DNA of 64,000 nt from Orbicella franksi (lineage: Eukaryota): NCBI GenBank assembly GCA_964199315.1, contig OZ116698.1, positions 5,208,001 through 5,272,000 of the forward strand. Reading direction: 5' to 3'. The position numbers and the translations under genes are program-made. Positions 2,843-63,100 of this stretch are shown one piece after another; the stretch's first letter is position 1, and the number at the start of each line of letters is the position of its first letter. The notes below the pieces were generated by a model. It made no database searches, was not told the origin of the DNA, and saw only the letters and a list, made by a program, of their open reading frames with translations.

Positions 2843-5371
2843 CCCTTAACATACTAAGTGGACATGTGTCCAGATAAATACAGCCTCACTTTCGGCGAGC
2901 TCCAAGTTCACTTTCTAGGGCCTGGAAGCTAAGAACCCGTTTTGGGTAGGCTTACACAAAGTGTTTTTCTAAAATATCAAAGATTTGGCCGAATTTGGGT
3001 TGATTTAAAGGAAATTTTTGCAGTTTGTTTTGTTAACACATTGTATACATGGGCGATTTAAAAATGGCGGCTGCTAAAAATGATGCTTTGCTAAATTCTG
3101 ACCCTGGAAGTCGTCAAAGCGGTGTCAATATTCTATTTGTTGACGAAGACGAGTTGCCTTTGGCATATTTAACGGAGCACCGAGTCTCTGAGGATGAGTT
3201 TTTGGCAGATGAGTCGGAATCTAGCCAAGAGGAGTCTGATGAACAGGACACGGATGAGGATGTGGAGGAAAATGACTGGTCTGAGGATATCAATCGAAGG
3301 GAAGATGTAGAATTTCAAGAAGAGGTTGGAATAAATGTTGATTTTGAAAACCTTGGATCTTGCCTCGATTTCTTTTTGCTGTTCTTCACTGAAGAGGTAT
3401 GGCAGTTTCTAGTTAAACAAACTAATTTATATGCAGGACAGAAAAGGGGCCTTGAAGAAAGTTCTGTCTGGTATCCGGTGACAAGAGATGAAATGAAAGC
3501 TTGGGCCAGCTTGTATCTAAACGTGGGTTTAATCACCAAACCAAACCTTAGCTCATATTGGAGCACAGATCCAGCTCTTAGCTCTCGATTTTTCCCTGCC
3601 ATAATGTCCAGGGATCGATTTTTCCAGATTTTGCAATACTTGCATTTTGCCGACAACACCCAGGCACCCAGGGCTGACTCTGAATTACAATAAATTATAC
3701 AAGCTTGAGCCATTTCTGGACCTAGTAATACCAAGGTTTCAGCAAGTATATAAGCCTAACAGGCAGCTTGCCATTGATGAAACTTTGATAAAATTCAAAG
3801 GTAAAGTGCATTTTAGGCAGTTCATTCCAATCAAGCCCGGGAGATTTGGAATCAAAGCATTTACACTTGCTGAATCTACTAGTGGTTATTTGCTAAATAG
3901 CAAGATTTATACCGGTAAGGAAGATGATGGAGTCCAGAGAGACTTAGGTCGAAAAGCTGTCATGTCTGTGATTGAGCCATACCTAGACAGGGGATATTAC
4001 GTCTTCATGGATAATTACTATACGTCAGTTACTTTGTTTGAGGAACTTGATGAAAGGAAAACCCTAGCATGTGGGACAGGTAGATCCAACAGGTCAGGCC
4101 TACCAAAAGCAATATGTGGTCTGAAAGAAAAGAAAGTCAAACAGCTAAAAAGGGGAGAGAGTTTGTTCAGGCAGAAAGGAAGTGTGACATGCGTGACATG
4201 GCATGACCGAAAACCAGTGAGTGTTTTGGCCACCACTCCCACAAGTAAAATTGATCAAAGTGCTGTCCAGTGCTCTGTCAAGGTCAATGGAACTTGGGAA
4301 AAGAGGGACTTTGCTAGGCCAGGTGTAATTAACCTATATAATAGTTACATGGGTGGTGTGGATTTGTCAGACCAAAGGGTTGTTTCATACGCCCGACTTA
4401 TGAGGGGAGTAGTCTGGTATTTCAAGGTTTTCTTTTACACGATTGAAGTGTGTATTTCAAACGCACACATCTTGCACTGTAAATCTCCTAATCATGCCAG
4501 CATTTCCAGTCTTGAGTTCAGAAAGTCAGTGCTTAAGGCATTAGTTGAAGGCAAATGCTTCAGGAGACACACAGGATTACAGCAGATCCCTGTCACTATC
4601 CCTCACATTAGATTTAACCGTGATCATTTCCATCACCTCATAAGTCATGACACCAGATCTACCTGTAAGCTGCACATTCAACAAGTGAGGACCATATACA
4701 CCCTGTGCTGTTTGTGGAGTTAGAATGTGTTCAGAACCTTGCTTCCAAAGATACCATACAGAACAAAACTATTACTTTGATGACAACTGTTATAATGGTC
4801 CCAGACGACTGAAAGAGGGAGGAGGGAGGCCTTTTTAAAGGGGATGAAGGAGATTGCTATGGAATTAACATGTTAGGGACAGTGGATGTGTCTTAAATGA
4901 ATAAGTGAAATAGAACATGATATGGATTTAGCTGATTGAGACTGACTAAAACTGTTTCTCTTGTCAGAATTTTCATATTTTTACCTTTTCATAGTCAGCC
5001 ATGCAAGTACTGATTTCTCATCTTTTTATTAGAAAGACACTTTTAAAACCTTTTTTCTTTTCAATTCTAACTTGTAAAAGATCAGGTGTTGGAGAAACAT
5101 GGATATAAATGTAATTCTTCTCTTCTTTACATATGATGTTTTATAATCTTCTGAAAATTAGCATAATTATGCAAATTATGCAACTCATGGTGTCACATGA
5201 TTTCATATATCCCATAATTTTGTAATCTTATATGAACACGAATTTTAAGCTCTTTATAAATATATATGGTTTTATGAGGTTTCTGTGTAATGTTTTTGCT
5301 TAGCATGCCTTAGAAGGCAGAGGGCTTGTATTCTCTTAAAATAACCCCACCCCCTCATAGTATGCAAAGGG
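2843..5371 (+). mobile_element. piggyBac DNA transposon
   Basis: TTAA (2839-2842)-CCCTTAACATACTAAG ... CATAGTATGCAAAGGG-TCAA (5372-5375); imperfect 16-bp TIR (13/16); inserted in the family B1 3' UTR. Confidence 0.85.
3049..4838 (+). pseudogene. piggyBac transposase (DDE_Tnp_1_7 type) with frameshifts at ~3690 and ~4700
   Basis: Acidic N-terminus; FTEEVWQFLVKQTNLYA; AIDETLIKFKG..RQFIPIKPGRFGIK; FMDNYYTS; YNSYMGGVDLSDQ; C-terminal Cys-rich CAVCGVRMCSEPCF after a frameshift. Confidence 0.9.
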
Positions 5372-5786
5372 TCAATGCAAAACTCGTAATGCAATTTTAT
5401 TTTTCCTAGTTACACTGTGCTTGGTCTCCTTCATTGGTGCACTGCACAGTGGTTTTTACAGTTTTATTTTTCATCCCGCTAAACATAATCCCTAGCTCTC
5501 TATACATCATTTTACTTCTATTTACACATTCAATTATTTTCCCGAATTTCCACTCTGCTGGGTCTCCTTCATTGGTGTCCTGCACAGCAGTTTGCTCTAT
5601 TTATATTAATGTAGGGGGTCTGGGGCGAGAAAGGTCTCAGGCTCTTTTATTATTATCATAATAGACATCATAAAACCCTTAATTTCATGATTTTAGGATG
5701 ATTCCAATTACTGTACTTACCGTAATTCTCAATCAATGTAAATTAGAAATATGTTTGTACAAATAAACTTTGATTTCCAAAAAAAA

Positions 5787-5940
5787 GTATCTGTTCTTAT
5801 CAGCTTAATATCTGATATGCTGCTCATTAAGCAGCTCATAGATTAAACTGATTTTTGGAACTGGGCTGTGGAAAAGAGGCTTGCCTCGTCCCAGCCACGG
5901 GTTGCCTCGGTATAGCACTACCTCCGAGTGCGGCCCACTT
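5787..5940 (+). ncRNA. U2: U2 snRNA, 3' portion (nt ~36 to the end)
   Basis: GTATCTGTTCTTATCAGCTTAATATCTGATA, Sm site GATTTTTGG, 3' stem-loop GTTGCCTCGGTATAGCACTACCTCCGAG; directly follows a retroelement A-tail. Confidence 0.95.
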
Positions 5941-6170
5941 CCCCTCGGGGAAGAAACCTTCATTCAATCAAAGAAAGAAATCAAAGAAAGCCTCCTCCTG
6001 ACACTAATGTCTGGCGTTTTTCTCTGTCGGAAGGCACAGTCTGAGGAGGGAAGCTACTGTAGAGCCACCTAGAAGTGAGGCTGGAGGTTCTAGCATACCC
6101 ACAAAGCACTACCACAAGGATATAGAGTTAAGGAGGTTTGCCTTTGGCGGCCCCCTCGTAAAGAATGTTC

Positions 6171-6189
6171 ATACTTACCTGACGCGGGA
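6171..6189 (+). ncRNA. U1: U1 snRNA 5' fragment (nt 1 to ~19)
   Basis: ATACTTACCTG is the invariant U1 5' end; it lies ~230 bp downstream of the U2 3' end; the following sequence has no U1 stem-loop I GATCA loop and is shared with 18067+. Confidence 0.75.
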
Positions 6190-6426
6190 GTGTATGGCCG
6201 GAGGCCCTACCATTTTGGTGCGGTTTTTCGTGACCCTCTTCAGTTTTTTGGTAAGTTTGCCAGTTTGATCTGGTTTTTTGGCTGTTTTTTAGCCGCCATA
6301 TTTCCTTCGGGTCTTCTTGTTGGCTTAGGGTCACCCATCCGGAATCTTGTTTTTGATAGTTAAGCCGGGTCACCCATCCAGTTGGGCTTAACTTGGTAGG
6401 GTCACCCATCCATCTGGGCCCCGGCC

Positions 6427-6609
6427 TGTTCGGAACTGAAATTTTGTGTTCATTTTGTGTAAGGCGCGTTGCCTATTTACCGAGTGGAGACTAGGTCTGA
6501 GTGATGACATGTTGTAAACGAAGAAACGTGAGCTGGACGTTCGGGTCGAAGAGCAGATGAATATTGATATAAATTTTGTTGCGTTTATGGAATAAATCGT
6601 TCATTTTCA
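6427..6609 (+). repeat. BEL 5' LTR
   Basis: TGTTCGGAAC...CATTTTCA with AATAAA near its end; 6 differences from 12247-12429 by manual alignment. Confidence 0.97.
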
Positions 6610-6627
6610 TGGTCCTTCGAGCCGGAT
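6610..6627 (+). promoter_or_regulatory. Primer-binding site complementary to the tRNA-Tyr 3' end
   Basis: TGGTCCTTCGAGCCGGAT is the reverse complement of ATCCGGCTCGAAGGA-CCA, directly after the 5' LTR. Confidence 0.85.
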
Positions 6628-6846
6628 ATTGGATTTGGAGAAACAGTTTCGACGATTGGTCGAGCAAAAGGAGAGTTGGATCCGTTTATTACTGCGAAGA
6701 AGTTGGTTTTCGCATATTGGCGATTTGGCGCCAAACAAACCACATGTGTATTGCATCAGCACTTTGAACGAGAGGAACTTCTGTGAATGTGCAGACCTGT
6801 AATTGTTGCGATTATATGAGGTTAGTAAAATTTGTGGTCTTTCAAA

Positions 6847-9800
6847 ATGTCGAAAGATTTAGAAGTTATCAAGAAAAAGAGAAAATTCCTGAGAAAATCT
6901 GTCACAGACACGTTGAAGTTAATCGACGAAGCCCTGTCACAACAAGATAATTATGCACGAGTTCAAGTGTTGAAAGATAATGTCACAAGTGCAGTGACTT
7001 GCAGGAAGTGCAAGCCACGATGTGCACAATGTTAGAGGATGAAGAGATCGAGGTGGAATGTGAGAGCCATAATGAATACGAAGCGCGTGTAATTGAAAGC
7101 ATGGCCAAAATGACAAGTTATTTGGCAAGTAAACAAGTTCCGGAAGTACAATTGTTAGGAAGCAATCCACCCGTATCCCAGTCGTCCTCTCAAGTACAAG
7201 TTAAGCTACCCAAGATTAATCTACCAACCTTTGATGGAAATGTTTTGAGCTGGCAACCCTATTATCAGTCGATAAAAGTTTCAGTGGTTGACAATCCGTT
7301 GTTGGCAGATGTCCAAAAATTAGAGTACTTGATGAGATCGCTAAAGGGTTCGGCTGCTGAAGCGGTGAAAGGTTTTGCGGTGGTACAAGCGAATTACAAG
7401 ACAGTTTTGGAAATCTTGAAGGAAAGATTCGGGCATGCAAGGTTAATACTTGATGCACATGCAAGATCCTTGATCCATTTGCCACGTTTGAGCTCTGATG
7501 ATGCAACTTCCATGCGTAAATTCTACGATGAAGTGATAGGTCACGTTCGCTCTGTTGAGTCCTTTGGTGAAAAGTTTAATTCTGAAACTTTGGCTCCAGT
7601 TCTTGTGCCTCTAATAGTTGACAAGCTGCCAAAAAAAGTTGTGGAAAAATGGAAATTGGAGCTTAATGAGGAGAAAGCTAAACAGGACTGTGTGGAAGTG
7701 AAAATACTGTTTACTTTCTTGGAGCAATTGATAAGAGCTAAAGAGTCTTCACAGCCTCCTTCTCTTGATTCCAAAGCTCCGGCAAAGGAAAATCTTGGAA
7801 ATCGTGAAAACCGTTTCAAGTTTAACCGGTCACAAAAATTATCCACCTCTGCATTATGTGCGGCAACGCAAGAGGGCAAGTGTGTCATTTGCTACAAAAA
7901 CCATGGTTTGAAGTCATGTGTCACTTTTCTGTCATTACCTGTGAAAGAAAGATTCAGAAAAGCAACGTCTAAAGGCCTGTGTTTCCGATGCCTTGAACCT
8001 GGTCATAGAGCCGAAGTGTGCCAGAAACCTCCATGCAAGCATTGCCAAGGTAGACATCACAGTCTCCTGCATCAGGATTCAGCTCGTCCTCCCTTGGAAG
8101 AAGTCAAGGTGGAATCAGCCCCGGAATTACTACCCTCGTCGTCAGGTCCTGCTTTGCCGTCCTCAGTTGTGGCAAATTCTGTTGCAGTGAGCTCAGGTGG
8201 AAAAGTGATCCTGCAGACCATACCAGCTATTTTGTGTGGATCAAATGGGTGTTCAAAAGTTGTGAGATGTTTCTTTGATCCTGGTTCTCAAACGTCGTTT
8301 GTTCGGCAGAGTGTAATTGATGAGCTTGGTCTTGATGGGAAGAGTGTCAAAATTGCTGTTTCTGGATTTGGTGGAGAGGCCACCAAGAGCACTTTGCGGA
8401 AGAGAACTGCGTTTACTGTGGTACCTATTGACAAATCTGGACAGCCTCAATGTATTGAGGCACTTACTACACCAGTAATATGCCGGCCAGCTGAAGCTGT
8501 GGATATTCATCCAACAAGATGGTGTCACCTTCGAAACATAGCATTTCCTGAAGAATTCCCTAGAGAGGAACAAGAGATTGATGTGCTTATTGGCTTGGAT
8601 TTCTATTATTCCTTTGTGACAAGAGACATTGTAAGAGGGGGTTCCCGTGAGCCAGTTGCAGTTCGCACAACTTTGGGTTGGGTCTACTGTGGGCCAACAG
8701 GTGGTCATGGCCAAGAATGCACTGTGTCTATGAATGTTCAAATTAGTGTTGAAGAACAATTGAATGAAACACTTCAAAAGTTCTGGGATTTGGAGTCCAT
8801 TGGTGTCAGACTTGCTGAAAGTTCAATTTCTACTACTCATGCAGAAGATGTGGTCTTGAAGAAGTTTAAAGAGACACTAACATACAATGATGGTCGCTAT
8901 GAAGTATCCTTACCATGGAAGGAAGATTGCATTTCATTGAAAGATAATTACCGGCAAGCGGAAAGTAGGTTGTACAATCTAGAAAAGAAGTTGCTCCATG
9001 AGCCAGTGAAAGCTGCATTGTACAGAGAAGCGATTAACAAGTATGTTGAGAACGGTGTTGCTGAAGAAGTACCTTGTGATGAAATTACACCAACAGATGG
9101 GCGTCCGGTGTTCTATCTCCCTCATCATGCGATCATCAGGGAAGACAAGCAGACAACCAAGACAAGAGTTGTGTTTGATGCATCAGCGAAAGATAGCAAT
9201 GGTGTCTCTCTGAACAGCTGCTTAGAGCCAGGCCCAGCATTACAGCCAGATTTGGTCGGAATTCTTCTGCGTTTTCGAAAGAATTATGTTGGTATCATGG
9301 GTGACATAGAGAAGATGTTCTTGCAGATTCGGTTAAAAGAAGAAGACAGAGATTCACACCGGTATCTGTGGAGAGATTTGGACCCCAAGGCCATGCCTAA
9401 GTTTTACAGAATGACAAGGGTCACATTTGGAGTTGTTTCCAGTCCGTTTCTTGCCATTGGCACTATTCAAGAGCATGTGAAAAGGTGTAAAGAAACATTC
9501 CCTGTTGCATCAAATGAAATCTTGAGGAACACTTATGTTGATGACTTTGCTTCAGGGAGAGACAATGTGCAGGAAACGCTGAAATTACAGCGAAGTGCTA
9601 CTGAGCTTATGCAGAAAGCTGCCTTTAATTTGACAAAATGGTCAAGCAATTCATCTGAGCTTATGGAGGCCATACCAGAGAGGGACAGAGCAGCAGTTAG
9701 TCTTGTCAGCCTGGAAAGTGATCTAGCAGAAGCACATCCAATCACAAAAGCATTAGGATTAAAGTGGAATACACTTACTGACAACCTTGTCTTTACAATT

Positions 9801-12150
9801 GATGTGGACATTGTTAAGTCGAGATCAAAGACAGTGTACACTAAAAGAAAGGTGGCGTCTTTAGCAGCAAAGATATTTGATCCGATTGGTCTAATCGCAC
9901 CCTTTTCAGTGAGGTCAAAATTAATTCTTCAAAGCTTGTGGACAAAGGGTGTTGGATGGGATGAGGAAATTCCCATGGAAGTCTCATCGAAATGGAATCA
10001 GTGGGTTCAAGAGATTTCTGAACTTGGACACCTTCAAATTTCTAGATGTTACACTGATTTGCCATTAGGTCAGAACCCCAAAGTAGAGCTACACGCATTT
10101 GGTGATGCGTCAGAAGTTGCTTATGCCTCTGCAGTTTATCTGAGAGTTGTTTGTGAAGATGGAAGGGTATCTACCAGTCTTGTGATGTCCAAGACCCGAG
10201 TGGCTCCTGTAAGGAAGATTACCCTACCGCGCTTAGAGTTGATGGCTGCTGTAATTACTGTTAGACTTTGCACCTATGTCAAAGGTGCAATAGATTGTCC
10301 CATTAGCCGCATTGTTTGTTGGACAGACAATTCTTCAACGTTACACTGGATTAGAGGAGCAGCCTCACAGTGGAAACCATTTGTTGCTAATCGTGTTATT
10401 GAAATTCAGTCGTTGCTGGATCCCAGTGTTTGGAGGTATTGTCCAGGACCGCAGAACCCAGCTGATCTACCTACCCGAGGTTTATCTGCAAGTCAGTTAC
10501 GAGAGAGTCATTTGTGGTGGAAAGGACCCTCTTGGTGGCAAGAGTCCGAAAAAGATTGGCCCAAGGATTTAAGGTCAAAACCCTCCAGTGAAATTGTTAA
10601 CCCAGAGAGGAAGAGTAAAGCTAGTGTCAGTTGTGTTGTGCAACCCAAAGAGCCGTTTATTGACTTCACAAGATTCAGCAAGTATAGTCGCTTGCTAAGA
10701 ACTGTTGCTTGGATCAGAAGATTCGTTAGCAACTCAAGAGTGAAAGAAGAGGAAAGAATTGACAGCCCTTTAACTGGTTTAGAGATACAAAATGCAGAAG
10801 AATGGTTGATATCTCATGTACAAGAAGCAGGTTTTCCTGAAGAAATTGCGTCATGTAAACAGCATGGTCCAGTGAAGGACAGCAACCTTGCCAATTTAAA
10901 CCCGTTTATGTGTCCAACTAGTCATTTTCTTCGTGTTGGAGGAAGAATTGACAAGTCACTGTTGCCAGAAGAGGAGAAACATCCTATTATCCTGCCTTCT
11001 AACCATCCTGTTGTTAAGTTGTTAATTGATGATATTCACAGCCGTGAACTACATGCTGGAGTTGAACACACTTTGTCACTTTTGCGACAGAGATTTTGGG
11101 TGATCAAGGGACGATCGACCGTCCGTCAGACACTAAGGAACTGTCTAATTTGTCGCCATTACCAAACAAAACCCTTTGGTCAGCAGATGGCACCACTTCC
11201 TGAAGACAGAATTAAGCCTACACCACCGTTCACTAACGTGGGTCCAGACTTTGCTGGTCCTTTGTATTTGAAAGACAGTGGTGAAAAAGTCTATATCTGT
11301 TTATTTACATGTGCAGTTACCCGTGCAATACACTTGGAGTTGGTATGTGATATGACAACTGAGCGATTTCTCCTTGCTCTTAGACGGATGATTGCAAGAA
11401 GAGGAATGTGCAGCATTATTTGGTCAGATAATGCAAAAACTTTTAAGGCTGCCAACAAGGAGCTACAGCGATGTTGGAGAGTATTGGAATCAGACCAGAC
11501 CCAAAGTGCTGTCTGAAAAGAAGATTCAGTGGAAGTTCATTGTGGAAAAAGCCCCATGGTAGGGTGGCTTTTATGAACGTCTTGTAAAGAGTGTCAAGAC
11601 GCCACTGAAGAAACTATTTGCCAAAGCAATGTTGGATGCCGAGCAGTTAACTACTATTTTAGCTGAAATTGAAGCACAGCTGAACAGTCATCCTCTTACT
11701 TACCTTGGTGCAGACCCTGATGACTACAGTGTGATTACCCCTGCACAGATTTTGATTGGCAGGAATCTTCAAGCGTGTCCGACTAAAGACACTCATGTTT
11801 CAGAACAGACCTCAAGAGCCCTCACCAAACGTTTTCAGTATCACCAGAAGCTTGTAAATGGATTTTGGAAGCGTTGGCATGCAGAGTACCTAAAATCCCT
11901 GACACCTGTCAAGAAATGGTACAAGATTGGTCGTGAAATCTGCAAAGGTGACTTGGTCCTAGTAAGTGAGGATCGTGTAGCTCAGGGTCAGTGGTCACGT
12001 GCACGAGTGGAAGACACCCACACAGGCCGTGACGGTCTTGTCCGGTCCGTTACCCTGCGGACCTCATCTGGAAGTCTTACCCGTCGTCCAGTACAGCGGT
12101 TACACCTGTTTGAAAGCTCTGATGCTGACTTAGCTGCTGAACTTAATTGA
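6847..12150 (+). pseudogene. BEL/Pao gag-pol polyprotein with a few lesions (frameshifts ~6995 and ~11510, stop ~11559)
   Basis: KLPKINLPTFDG gag motif; Cys/His knuckles; FFDPGSQTSF protease; YVDDF RT; HAFGDASEVAY RNase H; GPDFAGP and IWSDNAKTF integrase; 1505-aa open stretch at 6999-11516. Confidence 0.95.
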
Positions 12151-12235
12151 ACTTTATGAGACCTTGTTGAACATTTTAGTTGAACTCTATTGAACTTGGT
12201 TGACAAGTTACATGTAGTGATGCACTCCCTGCATC

Positions 12236-12246
12236 GGGCGGGAGGA
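12236..12246 (+). promoter_or_regulatory. Polypurine tract of the BEL element
   Basis: GGGCGGGAGGA directly before the 3' LTR. Confidence 0.8.
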
Positions 12247-12429
12247 TGTTCCAAACTGAAATTTTGTGTTCATTTTGTGTAAGGCACGTTGCCTATTTAC
12301 CGAGTGGAGACTAGGTCCGAGTGATGACATGTTGTAAACGAAGAAATGTGAGCTGGACGTTCGGGTCGAAGAGCAGATGAATATTGTTATAAATTTTGTT
12401 GCGTTTATGGAATAAATCGTTCATTTTCA
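12247..12429 (+). repeat. BEL 3' LTR
   Basis: TGTTCCAAAC...CATTTTCA followed by TSD CGGCC. Confidence 0.97.
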
Positions 12430-12552
12430 CGGCCTTTTGGGCTTGGCTTAAGGTCTGCCCATCTTCTTGTATCTCTTTGCTGGGTCTTCCACCCCTTTGG
12501 CCCAGTCTCTTTTCGCTGTTGCAATTATTTTGGGCTCATATTTACATCTCAA

Positions 12553-14039
12553 ATGCCTGTTCCTCAGCCTAAAACCATAGTTATCCATGCCGATGGCATA
12601 GTGGCTGCCATGTCTACCAATGTCATTGTTCAATTATTGTCGAAAAAACTCGACTTTAAAAGGGTTCAATCCATCCAATTTATTCCCAATGGTCGCATTC
12701 GGATCACTTTTACATCCACTGAATACCGTAATGCCATCTTGGGGAATAAAGTTTTGTGGCTCGATGATCTTCCCGAACTCCAGGTTATGGAGTCGGACTC
12801 CCCCGTTACCTCCGTGTACGTCCACTATCTTCCAGTGGAAGCCGGCAACACCGGGATTCGCTTGGCTCTTGCCCCTTTTGGCAAGGTACTCGACATCTCA
12901 TACCAGCGTTTTTCCGGTTTTAAGCAAATTTCGACTGGCACTCGAATCGTCCGTATGTCTTTGGAACAGCACATCCCGTTTCAATGCAATATCCAAGGCT
13001 ACCCTTGCCGTGTGTGGTATTCTGGTCAGCCGCTCAAGTGCACGATCTGCAAAGGGGCCCATAAAGCTGCGGAGTGTCCGGACTAAAACAAGTGTAAACG
13101 TTGCCATCAGCCCGGTCACTTCGCCAAGGACTGCAAAAATGCTTGGGGTACCACTCCCCAGAACCATCATGCTCCAGCGGGTCCATCCACTGCTCCCAAC
13201 CCTAATCCCCCTGCCCCCGTCCCTGATCCCCTGCCCCCACCCCTAATCCCCCTACCCCTGTCTCCATGGATCCTAATGCTGCGCTTCCAGCCAATCCCGT
13301 GACAAATCAAGCTCCTCCACCGTTGATGTCTCTCGATCTTTCATCTCCTCATCTGGTGGAGTCGTCTGATGTCTTGGGAGAGTCTTCCCAGGGTGAGCCA
13401 GTCTCATCGCAGCTCTCCTTGTTCTCCGGATCTGAGGATTCCATTCATCAATTTACTGATGAAGAGATGGAGCTTTCCCCTACTGTTTCCTCATCCCCCT
13501 CCATCTCCTCCTTCTCGAGCTCAGCTGATGCCAGTCAGAGCATCCTCCAAAATAGCGCAATTGTCTCTAGCGATCCACCTGCGGTCGAGCAAATTCAAAC
13601 TGTATCCACTAATAGTAATGTAGCTGCTCCAAAGGCGGCCACCGTATCTGGTAATAGTAATGTAGCTGGTCCAAAAGTGACCAAAGTATCTAATAGTAAT
13701 GTAGCTGGTCCAAAAGTGACTAAAGAATCTTATAATAGTGTATCTGGTCCAAAAGTAGCCGGGTCTAATAATAGTTCTAATAGTAGTTTAAAGGGTGAAT
13801 CTGCCCTACCCAAATTGAGCCAAAATAGTAATGCTTCTCAGTCTCCCTCTGGTGTTGTCACGGATTCGGACTTGGGTTCTGAGTCCCCGTTCAAGAACCC
13901 CCAACCCCCTAGACCTCGTCGGGCTCCTTCCCAGAGCCCTCAGCGAGTGCATTCTCGCTCCCCATTGGTTCCATCCTCTCCTGGAGCTCATAGGGGTATG
14001 CCCCAGATGTCGCCTGACCGACCGTCTAGACGCTCTTAG
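12553..14039 (+). pseudogene. Family A ORF1 (RRM-like region, CCHC knuckles, Pro/Ser/Asn-rich tail)
   Basis: MPVPQPKTIV...VWYSGQPLKCTICKGAHKAAEC, then CKRCHQPGHFAKDC; stop at 13084 and a frameshift; tail with GPKV repeats. Confidence 0.85.
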
Positions 14040-14068
14040 TCTCGTTCAAGCTCCCTCCCTATCTCCTT

Positions 14069-17000
14069 ATGGCTTTGTCCATAATCTCTCTTAATGTCAA
14101 CGGCCTTCGTGAGTCCTCTAAGCGTGATGGTCTTGTGCAGTGGTTGCGATCTCTTCCTGTCACTGCAGATGTTGTGTGTTTGCAGGAAACTCATTGTATC
14201 TCCGATGTGGAGTGTAATTCCTGGTTTTCTTCTGGATTTAGTTTTGTTCTTTCTCCTGGTACCCGTCGTTCCGGCGGCTCATTATCCTTTATCGATCTGT
14301 TCTGCGGCTAGTTAATTTTTGGTGTGAAGTTCCTGGTCGTTCCTTGTTGTGTGAGTTTTCTTTATATGATGTTTCATTTCGTGTGCTTTGCTTGTATGCC
14401 CCCAATCGCAACCCTGCTCAAGACCTCTTTTTCAATGGCATTGCTGATGCCGTTGACCCCTCTATTCCAACAGTTTTGTGCGGAGACTTCAATACGGTCT
14501 TCGACCATACCCTCGATCGTTTCGGCTCCTGTGCCGGTGATACCTCGAGGGAGAGTACTCCTGCCTTAACTCGTCTCTGACTCATGTTGTGTCGTTGACA
14601 TATGGAGATACCTCCACCCAAATTCTTCTAGCTTTACCTGAAACAGGTGGGACGGTCAATTTGCGTCCCGCATTGACCTCATGGGATGTCCTTATCCTTG
14701 GATTTCATCTGTGTCAGCTTGTGACATCGTTCCTTTTTCCTTTTCTGACCATTGTGCCTTGTTGTTTACCTTTTCTATTCCTGATGTCATCCCCCCTGGT
14801 CCAGGTTTATGGAAATTAAATGTCTCCATCCTTCAAGATACCGATTATACCAAATTGATCACTGACTTCTGGCTTTCTTGGCGTCTTGCTCAAAATAATT
14901 TTCCGTCCTTATCTGATTGGTGGGAGCTTGGCAAATTCAAAATTAAAGATCTAACAATTGGATATTGTTCCAAAAAGGCTAAAGAACGTCGGGCCGAACG
15001 AGCCCTTCTATCTCGTCTGGCTGATCACCTAAAATCTCATGTTGACCTTGGTGGTCTATCCTGCTTGGGCCCATATCAATCCACGCTTGCTGAGCTGTCC
15101 AGGTTTGACCTTGAGGCAGCTCGTGGTGCTCAAGTTAGGTCTAGGATTAGGTGGGTGGAGGAAGGGGAGCGGTCTTCCGCTTATTTCTTCCGTCTCGAGA
15201 AGAAGCGATCAGCTGATCGTCGTATTTCCGCACTGGGAGAGAGTGATGGCACTTTCACCTCTGACATCACTGGTCTTTGTTATTCCATCTCCTCTTTTTA
15301 TTCTGGCTTGTTCACCTCGGAACCTACAGATGCTGCCGCTTGCAAGTCACTGCTGAGTAACATCTGCTTGGCCTTGACTCCCGAGCAGGCCTCTTGTTGC
15401 AATGGTCTTCTGTCCGTTGGCGAATGCTGGTCTGCACTACTGGGTGGGCCAAACGTAAGGTGCCTGGCTCTGATCGCCTGCCCATGGAATTTTACGTTAA
15501 ATTTTGGGATGTCCTCGGTGAGGACCTTGTTTGTGTTCTTAATCCATGCTATCTTGATGGTTGTCTCTCCCTCTCTCAGCGCAGTGGTGTAATTTCTTTA
15601 TCTTTCAAGAAGGGTGATCGCCTTCACATTCGTAATTGGCGCGTGATCTCTCTTCTTAATGTCGATTACAAGCTTGCTTCTCGAGTCATAGCTGGTAGAC
15701 TCCTCAAAGTGTTTCATCTTGTGGTGGAGAAGGACCAAACTTGTGGTGTTCCTGGTCACTTCATCGGAGAGAATGTAGCCTTTCTTCGGGACGTTGTCAA
15801 CTATGCCACTCTGTCCAACGTTCCGGTTGCTATTCTCTCCCTCGACCAGGAAAAGGCTTTTGATCATGTAGAATGGTCTTTTATGCGTCAAACCCTTCAG
15901 TCTATGGGCTTCGGAGACTCCTTTGTCAGCTGAGTTGATCTGTTCTACAATAATGTACGCAGTTTTGTGAATGTCAATGGCTACCTGTCGCAACCTTTCT
16001 TCTTGTCTCGTGGTGTGCGTCAGGGTTGTCCTCTGTCCCCATTGTTATATGTCTTGGTTTCCGAAGTCCTAGCTGTCTCCATTCGCGCCAACCCAAGAAT
16101 CGTTGGTCTTTCTCTTCCTGGTGTGCCGGCTCCGCTGCCTCCTATCTCTCAATACACTGACGATACGTCCATCATCGTCATCTCTGATGATGCCATCAAA
16201 GCCACCTTTGAGACCTACTCCATCTACGAGAGAGGTTCTGGTTCCAAACTGAACCTCTCTAAGTCCAAAGGTCTGTGGCTTGGCTCGTGGAATGGTCGTC
16301 AAGACCCTCCCGTCAATCTCGACTGGTCTTCTACCAGGATCAAAGTCCTTGGTGTCTTCATCGGTGTTGGAAATCTTGAGGAGTGTAATTGGACGCCTCG
16401 TATCGCAGCTGTTGAAAACGTACTTTCTTCTTGGAGGCAGCGTCAGCTTTCTCTTCGTGGCAGAGCCCTAGTGATCAATGCCCTTGCTCTTTCCCGCGTC
16501 TGGTATGTGGCTTCACTTATCCACATGCCTGCATGGGTTCTCAAAGAGCTTAATACTCTGGCTTTCAATTTCTTCTGGAAGGGTAAACGAGACCTTGTGT
16601 CTCGTTCTGTTGTTGTCCAACCCTCCCTCCTTGGTGGTTTTTCGGTCGTGAGCGTCAAGTTTAAAGTGTGGTCCCTGGTTGCCCAGTGGATCAAACGCTT
16701 TGCCAGCTCCCCATCTAGCTGATCTGCTTTCATGACCTACTGGTTCTCCTCTTGCTTCAATGCCACCCCTGTTGATGTTTTTTCTCGTCCTTTGGATTTT
16801 GATCCTAGGGTTCTGCCTCGTTTCTACCAGTCGCTCATTCTAGCCTGGCGTTCGCTTGACGGCTCTTTTTCTGTTGGTCGCTCCTCTTTGGTGATGGGGT
16901 CGTCTTCACCTCACTTTCTGACCCCTGCCTCTGGGATGACGACCAAGTCTTGTTACCAGTACCTTCTGTCTGAAAATTTGGCTACCCCCCACTGTGTCGT

Positions 17001-17595
17001 AAAGTTCCTTCCTACGTTCGGTGTCCTTTATTGGTCTACTACGTGGAGGGAACTTTTCTTCTTCGACACCGACCGTCAGGTCATCGATCTTACCTGCAAG
17101 ATCGCTCATGGTGTCCTCTACACCGCTGCTCGTCTGGCTTCTTTTGGTTATGACTTTAACATTTCCTGCTTTTGTGGTCCAGTCTCCGAGACCCTTGAGC
17201 ATCTGTTTTTCCATTGTCCTTTGGCTTATAGTGTTCTTTCTTGGCTTCAGTCCTTAATGTTTGTGTCCTCTCCGTTGGCTCCTTCTCTGGTCTGTCGTCA
17301 TGCCCTTTTTGGTTTTAACTCCAATGAGTTAGCTGTGGTGCCTCGCGTTTTTGTTTACATTCTCAACGTCTGTAAATTCTTCATATGGCACGCTCGGAAC
17401 GATTTTCGCTTTCGCGATGTCCGTCCTGGAGCTGCCTCTGTGATCGAGAACGTCAAAACTCGTGTTTGCTTCCATCTTCCCATTCATTTCAAAAGGTTTG
17501 TGTCTTCCAGGAAACGTCGCTATTTCCATCGCCAGTGGGGGGCCCAAGGTGCTGTAGCATCCGTGGTCGGCGATCGTCTCGTTCTTCATCTTTAG
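14069..17595 (+). pseudogene. Family A ORF2 (APE endonuclease, RT, C-terminal Cys motif)
   Basis: SLNVNGLR, CLQETH, CGDFN, SDH; RVISLLNVDYK, QGCPLSP, QYTDD; CFCGPVSETLEHLFFHC; several frameshifts and stops. Confidence 0.92.
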
Positions 17596-18049
17596 TCTCA
17601 ATCTGGGTTGTGGGTCTTTTGTCTGTCTGAATCTAGACAGTTGTCTTTTGTCTGCTCGAATCTGGGCAGTAGCTCCATGCTCCTAATCTGAACGTTTTTT
17701 GTTTTTGTGTCCTCTCGTGCTGGGTCTCCTTTATTGGTGTACTGCACAGAGGCTTGTATCAGTTCTGTTTTTGTCTTGTTATGTTTGTCATTACGTCTGT
17801 CCCGTGATCGTCTTTGATGTCGTGTAAAGCCCGTGTCTGTTGAAGTGTGTTCAATTTCTGACCGAGGTAGGCAGGGTTCGATTCCCCGGCGAAGTTGGCG
17901 AACTGGCTACGTTGAGTAGGGGTTCCCTACCCTAGGTGGACCATCTAGATGGCTTTGCACTCCCAGCCACTACGATGGATGAGCTTGTAGGCCAGCAAGC
18001 ATTGCACTGCCCTTCGGGGAGCTTGGCTGTCCACCTTAAATATAAAAAA

Positions 18050-18066
18050 ACTTACCTGATGCGGGA
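18050..18066 (+). ncRNA. U1: Second U1 5' fragment (nt ~3-19), probable target-site duplication
   Basis: ACTTACCTGATGCGGGA directly after the family A poly(A); one mismatch to 6173-6189. Confidence 0.7.
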
Positions 18067-18325
18067 TTGTATGGCCGAAGGCCCTATCATTTTGGTACCC
18101 TTTTTGTTGTCCTTCTTTAATTTTGGTAAGTTTGCCAGCTTTTTGCTGGTTTTTGTGACTTTTCTAGCTATTCTCTGGGTGCCATCTTACCTTCGAGTCT
18201 TCTTGTTGATTTCTTGGTCACCCATCTAGTGTTTGGTTAAGCCGGGTTGCCCATCCATTGGGGTCCTCGCCCATCTGGGCTTAACCTTTTGCCTGGTGTT
18301 TATCATGTCGCCACCGTTTTTTTCT
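18067..18325 (+). mobile_element. 5' end of a second family A copy, truncated
   Basis: Aligns to 6190-6420 (TGTATGGCCG.AGGCCCTA, GGTAAGTTTGCCAG, GGTCACCCATC repeats). Confidence 0.85.
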
Positions 18326-18379
18326 TAAACACACGGTGGACATCGGTCGGTTCCAGGCCTCTCAGCGACAGCATATTGA

Positions 18380-18395
18380 TCACCATATCTCAAAG
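18380..18395 (+). promoter_or_regulatory. snRNA proximal sequence element (PSE) upstream of U2
   Basis: TCACCATATCTCAAAG at -59, resembling the vertebrate PSE consensus TCACCNTNA(C/G)TNAAAAG; same -59 position at 30089 and 36234. Confidence 0.7.
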
Positions 18396-18438
18396 GAGGA
18401 AACCCTGGACCACCCTCCCAGGGGAGGGAAGGTCCCGT

Positions 18439-18476
18439 ATCGCTTCTCAGCCTTTTGGCTAAGATCAAGTGTGGAA
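18439..18476 (+). ncRNA. U2: U2 snRNA 5' fragment (nt 1 to ~34-38)
   Basis: ATCGCTTCTCAGCCTTTTGGCTAAGATCAAGTGT followed by retroelement sequence. Confidence 0.95.
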
Positions 18477-29581: not shown

Positions 29582-29700
29582 AAGTCTACAACACGGGGTA
29601 TTCCCAGGCAGTCACCCATCCAAGTACTAAGCCCGCCTGACAGGGCTTAACTTCGGTGATCGGACAAGAACCGTGCTTTCCCTGTGGTATGGTCATAGAC
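29582..29700 (-). rRNA. 5S: 5S rRNA gene copy (possibly a pseudogene)
   Basis: Reverse complement GTCTATGACCATACCACAGGG...GTTAAGCC...GGATGGGTGACTGCCTGGGAATACCCCGTGTTGTAGACTT followed by a TTTT terminator. Confidence 0.97.
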
Positions 29701-35326: not shown

Positions 35327-35409
35327 TGTTTACCATTCATTTGCAAATGGCTCGTGTGTGTTGTATGCTTTGCTGTTGTTGATCGGTTGCATTTCTTTGG
35401 GAATTGACG

Positions 35410-36292
35410 TAGTTTTCTGCACTTTAAGCTGCTTGAAAACTGTTGTGCGAGGCAGAATTCATTTTGCTTTCAATCATCTGATGTCACACAAGCCAATTTG
35501 ATGTCATAAATAACCATTATGCATGCGAACGTTACTGAGCGAGACTTAGATTCCAATTTATCCTGTGATCGTTTCACGGGTACTTTTCATGTTTTCTAGC
35601 TATCTTTTGAGCCTCCTGATTTCTGTAAAAAGTTATTTGTGCTTTCCAGCCACTGGAATAGCCAAAGTTGGTAGTAAAAGAAAGAAAAATGAACATATGC
35701 AAAATAAAACGGCCGAGAAAATGAAAAGTCTACAACACGGGGTATTCCCAGGCAGTCACCCATCCAAGTACTAACCCGCCTGAAAGGGCTTAACTTCGGT
35801 GATGGGATAAGAACTGGTGCTTTCCCTGTGGTATGGTCGTAGACAAGAGAAAGGGCTGAAAATTTAGTCTTTTGAACGAGTCACCAAAGCAAAAGCAAAG
35901 CAATAATACCAACCAGCAATCTTTTAGCAGGCATTTCTTGACTTCTATGCAAGTTGTATGCATGTGGAGAGCGAATGTTGATAACATAGCCCTTGTTTTC
36001 TGCCTGTGTCTGTAGCGCTATCTTAGTAACGGAGTCGCTATGGCTCTTGAACATGTTGCCTCGTTTTGGAGGGTAAAAAGGTGTTTCATTTCACTCACCC
36101 CTGGAGGGATGTTATCAACTTTGCTGCTGATTTTTGTGGACTTCTGCTGTAGACCAAGTGCGTCTACCTCGGCAACTTGCTCCATAGCGTCAGCCTACAG
36201 TCGGTTCCGGGCCCTGCAGCGACAGCATATTGACTACCATATTTCAAAGATGGAAACCCTGGACCACCCTCCTAGGGGAGGGAAGGTCCGGT
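35410..36292. repeat. Second copy of the spacer-5S-spacer-U2 promoter unit (first copy ~29265-30147)
   Basis: Collinear and highly similar over ~900 bp by visual alignment. Confidence 0.92.
35726..35844 (-). rRNA. 5S: 5S rRNA gene copy 2 (possibly a pseudogene)
   Basis: About 7 differences from copy 1; boxes A and C intact; TTTT terminator. Confidence 0.97.
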
Positions 36293-59991: not shown

Positions 59992-59998
59992 CCTTACG

Positions 59999-60080
59999 AA
60001 TGTGAAGGTGAATTAAGCAACATGACACGAGCATGGGACAAAGAAAAATTCTGAGTCCCCAACAGGAATCAAACCCTTGG
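59999..60080 (-). mobile_element. tRNA-derived SINE fragment
   Basis: Reverse complement GGGTTTGATTCCTGTTGGGGACTCAGAATTTTTCTTTGTCCCATGCTCGTGTCATG: a B-box plus a body I recognise from anthozoan SINEs (not database-verified). Confidence 0.7.
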
Positions 60081-60118
60081 CTGTTACATATTATTTTGTA
60101 TTGATTTAATCATTTTCA

Positions 60119-63100
60119 ATGCCTGTGGCACAGCCAAAACCTGTAGTCATACATGCCCATGGCACATTGGCTGCTATGTCCACCAATGTAATTGCACAAA
60201 TGTTGTCTAAAAAGTTAGACTTTAAAAGGGTACAATCAATTCAATTTATTCCAAATGGCCATATTCAAGTTACTTTCACATCTACTGAGTACCGTAACAC
60301 CATTCTCGGAAACAAAGTCCTTTGGATCGACGATCTTCATGAACTCCAAGTCACGAAGTTGGACTCACCTGTAAGACCTGCCTATGTCCACTCTCTGCTG
60401 ACGGAAGCTGGTAACACCGGGACTCTCTTGGCGCTTGCCCCCTTTGCCAAAGTCCTCGACATCAGTCATCAGCATTTTTCCTGTTTCAAGCAAATTTCTA
60501 CAGGCACCCGCATCATTCACATGTCCTTGGAACATCGTGTTCCTTTTCATTGCAACATCCAAGGTTATCCATGCTGTGTCTGGTACTCTGGCCAGCCCCT
60601 CAAGTGTACCATCTGCAAGGGAGCCCACAAAGCTGCTGACTGCCCAGACAAAAACAAATGTAAGAGTTGTCATTTGCCTGGCCATTTTGCCAAGGATTGT
60701 AAAAATGCGTGGAGTACTACTCCTCAGGCCCATCATGCTCCTGCCGACCCTTCCACTGTCCCCAACCCTGATCCCCCTGCCCCTACCCCTGATCCTAATG
60801 CTGCACCTCCAGTGGATCCTGTGGCTAATCAAGCTCCACCTCCGTTGATGTCTTAAGATATTTTGTCTCCTCATCAATCTGTGGTGGAATCCATGATGTC
60901 TTGGGAAAGTCTTCTCATGGTGAGCTTGTCTCATCACAAGTCTCCACATTTTCTGGATCCGAAGCATTGAAGATTTTACAGAGGAAGAGATGGCGCCTTC
61001 CCCCATCCCTCTTCATCCCCCTAAATCTCCTCTTTTCCCAGCTCAGCTGACGCTAGTCAGAGCATTCTAAAAGATTGCGCAATTGTCTCTAGTGACCCAA
61101 TTGTGGTCGTACAAATTTCAACCGCTAACAGTAGTGTAGCTGGTCCAAAAGAGGCCATTGTAACCAAAAATAGTAATGTAGCTGGTCCAAAAGAGGCGAT
61201 TGTATCTAATAGTAGTGTGTCGGGTCCAAGAGTGGCCTATGGTACTAGAGTAGCTGGTCCAAGTTGCCGGATCTAACAATAGTAGTTCTAATAGTAGTTC
61301 TAAGGGTGAACCTACCCTACTCAAGTTAAGCCAAATTTATACAGTTCCTCAGTTTTACTTCTTGTATCCTTCTGGTGTTGCTGCTGATGCGGACTCTATT
61401 TCTTCCGAGTCCACTTTTAAGGCTCCTCATCCTCCTAAACCTCGTCGCTCTGTATCTCAGAGCCCTCAACGGGTGCCTTCTTGCTCCCCTCTGGTTCCAC
61501 ACACCCCTGGTTGTCTTAGGGGTATGCCTCAGACGTTGCACGATCAACCGTCTAGACACTCCTAGTCTTGTTCAAGCTGCCTTCCTATCTCCACATGGCT
61601 CTGTCCATAATTTCTCTTAATGTCAACGGCCTTTGTGAGTCTTCGAAGCATGGTCTTGTCCAGTGGTTGCAATCTCTTCCTGTCACTGTAGATGTAGAGT
61701 GTTTACAGGAAAGTCATTGTACCTCCGATGAGGAGTGTCGCTCTTCGTTTCCTTCTTCTAGGCTTAGTTTTGTTCTCTCTCCTGGTACCCGACGTTTTGG
61801 CGGCTGTATCATCCTTTATCATTCTGTTCTGCAGCTAATTAATTCTTGGTGTGAAGTTTCTGGTCATTCTTTGTTGTGTGAGTTTTCTTTATATGATGTT
61901 TTTTTGTGTGCTTTGCTTGTATGCTCCAAATCGCAACCCTGTTTGATACCTCTTCTTTAATGGCATCTCTGATGCTGTTCATCCCTCCCTTCCAACAGTT
62001 TTGTGCAGAGACTTCGATACGGTCTTTGACCACACCCTCAATTATTTCGGTTCTTGTGCTGATGACGCGTTGAGGGCGAGTACTCCTGCCTCAACTCGTC
62101 TTTTTGACTCATGTTGTGTAGTTGACATATGAAGATATCTTCACACAACCTCTTCTAGCTTTCCTTGGAACAGGTGGAACAGTCAGTTTGCATCCTGCAT
62201 TGATCTCGTGGGATGTCCTTATCTTTGGACTTCATCTGTGTCAGCTTGTGACATCATTCCTTTTCGCTTTTCTGACCATTGTGCTTCGCTGTTTACCTTA
62301 TCAATTCCTGATGTCATCCCTCCTGGTCCAGGTTTATGGAAATAAAATATCTCCATTCTTCAAGATACTGATTATACCAAATTGTTTACTGATTTCTGGC
62401 TTACTTGGCATTGCACTCAAAATAATTTTCTGTCCTTATCCAATTGATGGGAGCTTGGTAAACTTAAAATTAAAGATGTAACAATTGGGTATTGTTCCAA
62501 AAACGCTAAAGAGCGTCAGGCCAAACGAGCCCTTTCTTTCTCATTTGGCCCATATCAATCCAGTCTCACTGAGCTGTTCAGGTTTGACCTTGAGGCAGCT
62601 CGTGGTGCTCAAGTGCAGTCTAGAATTAGGTGGGCGGAGGAAGTGGAGCAGTCTTCCGCTTATTTCTTCTGACCCGAGAAGAAGCGATCACCTGATCGTC
62701 GCATTTCTGTGCTGAGACAAAATGATTGCATTATCACCTCTGACTTCACTGGTCTTTATGATTCTATCTCTTCTCTTTGGCTTGTTCACTTCTGAGCCTA
62801 TGGATGTTGCCACTCACGAGTCACTGTTGAGTAACATCTGCTCGACCTTGACTCCTGAGCAGGCTTCCTCTTGTGATGGTCTTCTGTATGTTGGTGAATG
62901 CTGTTCTGCTCTACTGGGCATGGCCAAAGGTAAGGCGCCTGGCTCTGATGGCCTGCCCATGGAGTTCTATGTTAAATTTTGGGACGTCCTAGGTCAAGAC
63001 CTTGTCTATGTCTTTAACTCCTGCTATCGTGGTTTTTTGTCTCTCTCAGCGTAGTGGTGCAATTTCTCTATTTTTTAAGAAGGGTCTTTTCTTCGGGACG

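Follow-up and report, generated by a model that had tools for sequence, protein, structure and literature searches.

What role is played by exact copies of parts of the 5S rRNA internal control region that lie ahead of the coding region of a LINE, and do these parts belong to the element or to the host array around it? The question is raised by positions 6321-6412 of the window, that is, of the whole stretch of 64,000 nucleotides of Orbicella franksi DNA that was analysed. A preliminary description had placed this segment in the 5' UTR of a retroelement family, here called family A, and had seen in it copies of the box C and box A regions of the 5S genes, which it proposed as possible landing sites for TFIIIA, as an RNA segment antisense to 5S rRNA or as the relic of an ancestor that targeted 5S.

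The motifs were all found where they had been reported. The 11-mer GTCACCCATCC was exact at 6330-6340, 6369-6379 and 6401-6411 and again in the 5S genes at 29611 and 35755, and the identity with 5S extended to 12 nucleotides, including the next A, in two of the three copies (6369 and 6401). These copies lie in three plus-strand units at 6328..6340 (GGGTCACCCATCC, antisense of 5S nt 80-90), 6367..6379 and 6399..6411. The 11-mer assigned to the box A region, GGGCTTAACTT, was exact at 6384-6394 and in the 5S genes at 29643 and 35786. In coral 5S numbering, GTCACCCATCC corresponds to nt 80-90 (the box C core) and GGGCTTAACTT to nt 48-58 (the box A region); box C of the host 5S reads GGATGGGTGAC. 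Since Rfam placed both 5S genes on the minus strand (29583..29700, 91.6 bits with the 5S_rRNA model, our motif reference; 35727..35844, 84.5 bits), the leader motifs are antisense to 5S, and their orientation relative to U2 is the same as that of the real 5S genes. The degenerate fourth unit said to follow a BEL insertion was present as GGGCTTGGCTTAAGG (12439-12453) and GTCTGCCCATC (12453-12463), and the degenerate units announced at 18215-18290 as GTCACCCATCT at 18217, GTTGCCCATCC at 18246, CTCGCCCATCT at 18266 and GGGCTTAACCT at 18277. The inverted repeat was also as described, with AGTTAAGCC (6358-6366, plus strand, the sense reading of 5S nt 49-57) as its left arm and GGCTTAACT (6385-6393), within the box A-like 11-mer, as its right arm; its counterpart, GGTTAAGCC (18235-18243) with GGCTTAACC (18278-18286), differs by one A-U to G-C change, which is compensatory as claimed.

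Comparison with shuffled sequences, which had been proposed as a check, showed that these matches exceed expectation. With one mismatch or none, GTCACCCATCC had six matches in the window against 0.77 expected, a number reached in 0 of 100 shuffles, and six 11-mer positions were common to the leader and the window 5S against 0.04 expected, six being reached in 0 of 2000 dinucleotide shuffles. On these counts, the leader motifs derive from 5S and not from chance. Three other 5S-like matches, at 4993, 52556 and 53415, lie in unrelated sequence and were rejected as chance.

The segment is embedded in a small-RNA gene array. Upstream lies a plus-strand U2 snRNA gene (5763..5943, Rfam U2 125.5 bits, 5' part unmatched), in which the poly(A) end of a U2-targeting LINE lying further upstream takes the place of the first ~34 nt; Rfam found two plus-strand U2 genes in the window, both with their 5' parts displaced by retroelement tails. 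That upstream LINE itself contains a piggyBac-type transposase (DDE_Tnp_1_7) at 3049-4723, in two ORFs. Two U2-targeting families interrupt U2 at slightly different points, after GGCAAGGATCAG and after GATCAAGTGT (36291-36330 and 18442-18475, respectively). The U2 gene at 5763..5943 is followed by a host spacer leading to the U1 position (5944..6170, plus strand, 227 nt), which ends in ttc just 5' of ATACTTACCTG and would be a U1-type upstream promoter. Two sequence types are found 3' of U2, one leading to a minus-strand 5S gene (35343-35726) and the other to the U1 position (5944-6170), and since they have no detectable similarity the array must be built either from two or more types of unit or from one long compound unit.

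The first 256 nt of the family A 5' UTR occupy 6171..6426 on the plus strand, as delimited by an alignment of 12 leaders and by block identities. They comprise a mimic of the U1 5' end (6171-6190), a hairpin (6192-6208), an Sm-like ATTTTGG at 6212-6218, TTGGTAAGTTTGCCAG, which resembles a splice donor (6248-6263), and a conserved block (6293-6320), with the 5S-like units after it. The leader is interrupted by a plus-strand BEL/Pao LTR retrotransposon (6427..12429, defined by its LTR pair, domains and boundaries), which is flanked by a 5-bp duplication, CGGCC, at 6422-6426 and 12430-12434, has LTRs ~95% identical to each other and holds a single uninterrupted ORF of 1505 aa (gag-like, Pao peptidase, RT, integrase). 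The remainder of the 5' UTR follows at 12435..12552 (plus strand), with the degenerate box A-like motif and fourth C unit at 12439-12463 and, from 12512 on, a proximal segment common to family A copy 2. The body of copy 1 (12553..18049, plus strand) contains ORF1 and ORF2 with frame breaks, in which RT and zf-RVT domains were found, a 3' UTR and a poly(A), directly followed by ACTTACCTG.

The leader module, of ~250 nt, occurs twice in the window, at 6171 after U2 and the 227-nt spacer and at 18050 after the poly(A) of copy 1, with the same order of U1-like start ATACTTACCTG, hairpin, Sm-like site, splice-donor-like block and 5S-like units. The second occurrence (18050..18345, plus strand), placed by alignment, begins at U1 nt 3 immediately 3' of the poly(A), carries decayed C units and joins a U2 promoter at 18346; it is a leader that has been truncated rather than a full second element. 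The joint at 18346 is a rare rearrangement: in a DNA contig run most U2 promoters have the normal 5S-U2 spacer upstream. Family A copy 2 (59996-60119) has CCTTAC after the poly(A) of another element and then ~88 nt foreign to the usual leader; it rejoins the family at 60077, so that the common part is only the last ~40 nt 5' of the ATG. Its leader looks like one that was replaced or template-switched, and a tRNA sought in the replaced leader was not found.

We then looked for the module outside the window. A pattern scan of metagenome contigs gave two further leader copies, one of which, L002, has in order a 5S-U2 spacer, an intact U2, the same spacer as in the window, ttcATACTTACCTG, a leader with two exact GTCACCCATCC and the ATG of an intact ORF1. 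A protein search with the ORF1 of L002 returned 41 relatives, and eight were looked up, giving the loci L003-L018. In the following, W1 stands for the leader of family A copy 1 minus its BEL insertion, and W2 for the truncated second leader at 18050-18345.

The results showed that the leader is, as had been claimed, a 5' UTR: in 12 leaders, on independent public contigs, the U1-like 5' end continues into ORF1 of an endonuclease/reverse-transcriptase LINE. The leader runs uninterrupted for 258-302 nt into ORF1 and starts at ATACTTACCTG right after the spacer wherever upstream DNA is present. The junction ttc|ATACTTACCTG after a U2-U1 spacer was observed in W1, L002, L003, L008, L012-L015 and L018, and L001 has AGA for ATA; a spacer like that at 5944..6170 precedes the leader in L001, L002, L003, L008, L013, L015 and L018. 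In W2 and L017 a poly(A) is followed by ACTTACCTG, L017 being stacked behind the poly(A) of another element. L016 is a copy truncated at its 5' end, its leader starting at about nt 21, in unrelated coding-like DNA. Because the module travels with this truncated copy and is contiguous with ORF1, the leader is part of the retrotransposed RNA. The reading as host spacer, in which the U1-like and 5S-like module would be decayed array sequence, was rejected on the contiguity of the module with ORF1 in many independent contigs. Judged from these junctions, 6321-6412 forms the distal part of a genuine LINE 5' UTR; the LINE is autonomous, and its insertion site is the first bases of U1 snRNA genes. 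The contigs of two RNA runs and one DNA run that were mapped to 12400-18399 were too short and without back-joints, and the RNA-library contigs may be DNA. One run of poly(A) RNA gave 0 reads on 12400-18399.

The architecture of the element agrees with this assignment. ORF2 of L002 contains an N-terminal, apurinic-type Exo_endo_phos domain, RVT_1 and a C-terminal zf-RVT, and ORF1 has CCHC zinc knuckles (a weak match). Insertion is at a fixed position, the first bases of U1. By domain architecture and targeting, the family A element fits a Tx1-like target-specific LINE, a group in which PMC4494074 and PMC3706591 place Keno in U2 snRNA genes and Mutsu in 5S rRNA genes. In the papers searched, no U1-targeting non-LTR element was found.

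Positions 6171-6220, at the start of the leader, form a miniature U1 with the 5' end, one hairpin and the Sm-like site ATTTTGG, the corresponding site in L003 being CATTGTGGTAGTG. The U1-like 5' end ACUUACC (6173-6179) is exactly complementary to the conserved GGUAAGU located ~75 nt downstream (6250-6256), in the window as well as in L002, L003, L015 and L017; in some lineages GGUGAGU replaces GGUAAGU, with G-U pairing kept. The ACUUACC/GGUAAGU long-range stem is present in the predicted minimum-energy fold of four of nine leaders, and the predicted pairing has the look of the U1:5' splice site duplex reproduced within one molecule, unless the downstream motif is a real splice donor. In L017, ~200 nt after the U1-like start and at the usual position of a box C unit, the sequence is GGGTTCACTTACCTGTAC, in which the U1 5' end motif ACTTACCTG recurs. 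The leader of a U2-targeting element in L003 (L003:797-808) also holds a U1-type Sm site, AATTTGTGGTAG, and Sm-site mimicry may be common to snRNA-targeting LINEs.

The conservation of the 11-12-mers against the neighbouring UTR had been proposed as a check and was determined on the alignment of 12 leaders. They belong to 11 diverged lineages, the ORF1s of which are 36-74% identical to that of L002; these are lineages of public contigs. The blocks that stay conserved across the alignment comprise the 5' end of U1, the hairpin TGTATGGCCGRAGGCCC, the sequences TTGGTRAGTTCGCCAG and GCGCCATMTTWCCTTCGG, the 5S-like units and GGGCTT, which is located 17-22 nt after the last unit. There are two to four repeats of the unit GGTCACCCATCC, in many cases arranged as GGTCACCCATCCAGTGGGG at a period of 17 nt. 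The most widely shared 11-mer of the leader is GGTCACCCATC, which was found in 9 of the 11 lineages (the U1 5' end in 8 of 11), one to four times per leader and at variable spacing.

Exact units of GTCACCCATCC numbered four in L014, three in W1 and in L008/L018, and two in L001 (where the contig ends), L002 and L015, the last having one more unit with one mismatch. L012 and L016 have one exact unit each, together with two and one further units with one mismatch, respectively. No exact unit was found in L003 (one unit with one mismatch), in L017 (no near units) or in the decayed W2 (one unit with one mismatch and one with two). The exact box C core of 11-12 nt is thus present in 8 of the 11 lineages, with 18 exact copies in total. 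The mean pairwise identity at the three unit positions was 0.77, 0.75 and 0.82, respectively, against 0.45-0.47 for the stretches between and before them and 0.66 for the whole leader. For box C, the claim that was put to this check held in diverged copies, unit columns being 75-82% identical and their flanks 45-47%.

The spacing of the units ranges from 17 to 42 nt (17, 21, 29, 33, 39 and 42 nt). A coding explanation was rejected, the spacings holding no reading frame, and a role in circularisation was rejected because no complement of the unit was present elsewhere in the elements. The unit motif was not found elsewhere in the elements in either orientation, and it was absent from the leaders of the U2-targeting families. 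As the comparison of the leaders shows, the units remain exact although they differ in number and in spacing from leader to leader and the sequence between them changes, and they are probably functional. L017, with no C unit, and L003, with only the one-mismatch unit, both have long open ORF1 and ORF2; together with the replaced leader of copy 2, this makes the units dispensable at least in the short term.

The box A-like motif and the hairpin behaved differently. Boxes C and A had been presented as a pair, and this stood for the box C core, which is conserved, and not for the box A-like motif, which is lineage-restricted (column identity 0.47-0.53). Among the aligned leaders, GGGCTTAACTT was exact only in W1, L015 and L016. 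The AGTTAAGCC/GGCTTAACT stem was found in W1 and L016, with a single compensatory pair in W2 and with a mismatch in L015, and was absent from 7 of the 12 leaders, and the left arm AGTTAAGCC was present in only four to five lineages. In the same conservation check, the box A-like 11-mer and the hairpin were seen to decay at about the background rate.

The distance from the box A-like motif to the nearest C unit is variable, from 0-5 to 22 nt. Neither box A nor the intermediate element is conserved at a fixed distance from box C, which bears out the earlier remark that the arrangement is not that of a normal type-1 Pol III promoter. Rfam, applied to 5000-7500 at E<=5, gave no 5S_rRNA match and no U1 match, and at the gathering score its 5S_rRNA model matched nothing in the loci except the true 5S gene of L003. 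Since the box A-like motif has been lost in most lineages, the stretch is not a type-1 Pol III promoter, nor does it serve the element as a Pol III promoter, given the T runs of the sense strand, the dispensable box A and the lack of a match to the 5S covariance model.

What, then, reads the units? According to PMC2566860, fingers 1-3 of TFIIIA bind the box C sequence. The unit has the sequence of the finger 1-3 contact region, with no difference from nt 80-90 of the 5S genes in this genome. The proposal of TFIIIA landing sites was borne out in part: the box C core is kept far better than the neighbouring UTR, as expected of a finger 1-3 site, and box A and the hairpin, which had been included in the proposal, are not kept. 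The combination of exact cores with changing number and spacing argues for independent recognition sites rather than for one folded RNA. We tentatively favour, with a confidence just short of even, the reading that the leader contains a 5S-derived cluster of TFIIIA-type sites that act on the DNA copy and aid its transcription or its chromatin state.

The UTR is a mosaic assembled from pieces of host small-RNA genes, beginning with a shrunken U1 (5' end, one hairpin, Sm-like site) and ending with two to four units of GGTCACCCATCC, antisense to the box C core at 5S nt 80-90, followed by a box A-like remnant. In this model, the units would be independent sites for a sequence-specific factor that acts on the double-stranded DNA copy, and TFIIIA, through fingers 1-3, would be their natural candidate reader. 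The cluster would help the inserted copy, which lies behind a presumed U1-type promoter within the 5S/snRNA array, to be transcribed or to keep its chromatin open. The mosaic probably arose when the host sequence between U1 and the minus-strand 5S was captured or read through, and the order of the host array, U1, 5S (minus), U2, fits such a capture. Local alignment of the leaders with the host spacers of the window (U2-to-5S, 5S-to-U2 and U2-to-U1) gave z values all at or below 2.3, and the middle blocks of the leader had no detectable host source. TFIIIA is a 5S-specific factor that is abundant in oocytes of other animals. A more specific version, which we consider rather doubtful, is that the TFIIIA recognition core was domesticated, as a multi-copy regulatory module beside a miniature U1, by an autonomous LINE transcribed by Pol II, which would so borrow TFIIIA for germline expression or for holding its copies in active 5S/snRNA chromatin. 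If so, no earlier retrotransposon would be known to recruit TFIIIA other than for Pol III.

The evidence of conservation and of variable spacing would apply equally if another factor, either a host protein of the zinc-finger or nuclear-receptor type or the ORF1 or ORF2 protein of the element, bound the units, in which case the identity with 5S would record their origin only. The unit, read directly, includes a CACCC core and a GGTCA half-site, which other factors could read. However, the conserved stretch has the same extent as the portion common to the unit and 5S, GTCACCCATCC. We consider this explanation unlikely.

We give still less credence to a role of the units as RNA, in which the two to four stretches of 11-12 nt perfectly complementary to 5S rRNA nt 80-91 would let the leader RNA pair with free 5S RNA or RNP, perhaps to be localised, stored or protected. 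All units, whatever the lineage, are antisense to 5S when read along the sense strand of the element, but tandem duplication alone predicts a single orientation. The AGTTAAGCC/GGCTTAACT stem, with its one compensatory change, encloses the units in its loop in four lineages, but the absence of this stem from most of the leaders counts against the role, and the predicted unpaired probability of the units (0.23-0.53) is no different from the leader average (0.41-0.46), the predicted folds showing the units neither consistently paired nor consistently unpaired. G-U pairing would survive most single-base variants, a pattern that does not discriminate since 8 of the 11 possible transitions are wobble-compatible. 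The part of 5S targeted by the units (nt 80-91) is largely helical, which was counted against RNA pairing.

That the units are a neutral relic, a piece of host 5S captured once (for example by read-through from U1 into the neighbouring minus-strand 5S, or from a 5S-targeting ancestor), duplicated by slippage and not yet decayed, also appears improbable. The decay of the box A-like part and of the hairpin, the lack of exact units in L017, L003 and family A copy 2, and an array order that suits capture are what such a relic would leave. Against it, the units are 0.75-0.82 identical when the adjacent UTR is only 0.45-0.47 identical, in lineages with ORF1 identities of 36-74%, and the 18 exact copies are spread over 8 lineages, in which the number of units has changed independently.

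That a functional type-1 Pol III promoter lies on the minus strand and makes an antisense RNA across the leader is very improbable, because the 20-22 nt that separate the box C core from the box A-like motif in L015, L016 and W2 (18246-18287), close as they are to the native 21 nt, hold a further decayed C unit of the 17-21-nt repeat and were rejected as conserved 5S spacing, because box A is lost in most lineages and because the Rfam 5S model is silent there even at E<=5.

Site-specific LINEs in small-RNA arrays are models of harmless mobile-element life and templates for targeted insertion tools. Their transcription is mostly unexplained, and a leader made from two host genes, with a constrained 5S piece, offers a testable handle. 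If TFIIIA reads the units, a classic and supposedly single-purpose transcription factor would have wider roles, and the 5S, U1 and U2 clusters and their parasites would be mechanistically linked. A function of the units as RNA would provide a rare case of a messenger that pairs with 5S rRNA. An autonomous LINE with a leader of miniature U1 and iterated antisense box C cores was not found described in the incomplete set of papers searched.

Among known systems, the Tx1-clade LINEs Keno, Mutsu, Dewa, Kibi and Koshi, as summarised in PMC4494074 and PMC3706591, are like the present element in having an apurinic-type endonuclease and a fixed position in a multicopy small-RNA gene, and also in their dependence on the promoter of the target and in sharing arrays with U2-targeting relatives. 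The present element differs in its target, the first bases of U1, and in its 5' UTR of shrunken U1 and iterated antisense box C cores, of which PMC4494074 and PMC3706591 give no description. SINEU and the R2-type co-transcribed elements, as discussed in PMC4494074, resemble it in their snRNA-derived 5' end, their reliance on a flanking or target promoter and their internally deleted snRNA copies; SINEU, however, is described there as non-autonomous, crocodilian and without a 5S part.

The leader agrees with the internal control region of 5S genes, a type-1 Pol III promoter, in having the very box C core of the host 5S and, in some lineages, a box A-like 11-mer; in the leader, however, the spacing is not conserved, nor are box A and the intermediate element, several C cores are present and the covariance model gives no match. 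The 5' UTR of mouse L1 contains tandem promoter monomers, a variable number of ~200-nt units each with a conserved factor-binding core. Both leaders have short repeats in variable number in a LINE 5' UTR, whereas the repeats described here are 17-40 nt, derive from a host RNA gene and lie downstream of a presumed U1-type promoter.

Finally, SINE3, the Cassandra LTR elements and Helenus/Ajax (PMC4494074, PMC10886601) have, like the present element, taken up a part of 5S with sequence of the internal promoter. What they carry is 5S of nearly full length, sense-oriented, which is the actual or presumed Pol III promoter of a non-autonomous element. In contrast, the family A leader has only the 11-12-nt box C core, antisense to the transcript and iterated, in an autonomous LINE that codes for two proteins, and its T-rich sense strand, with many T runs, would stop Pol III.
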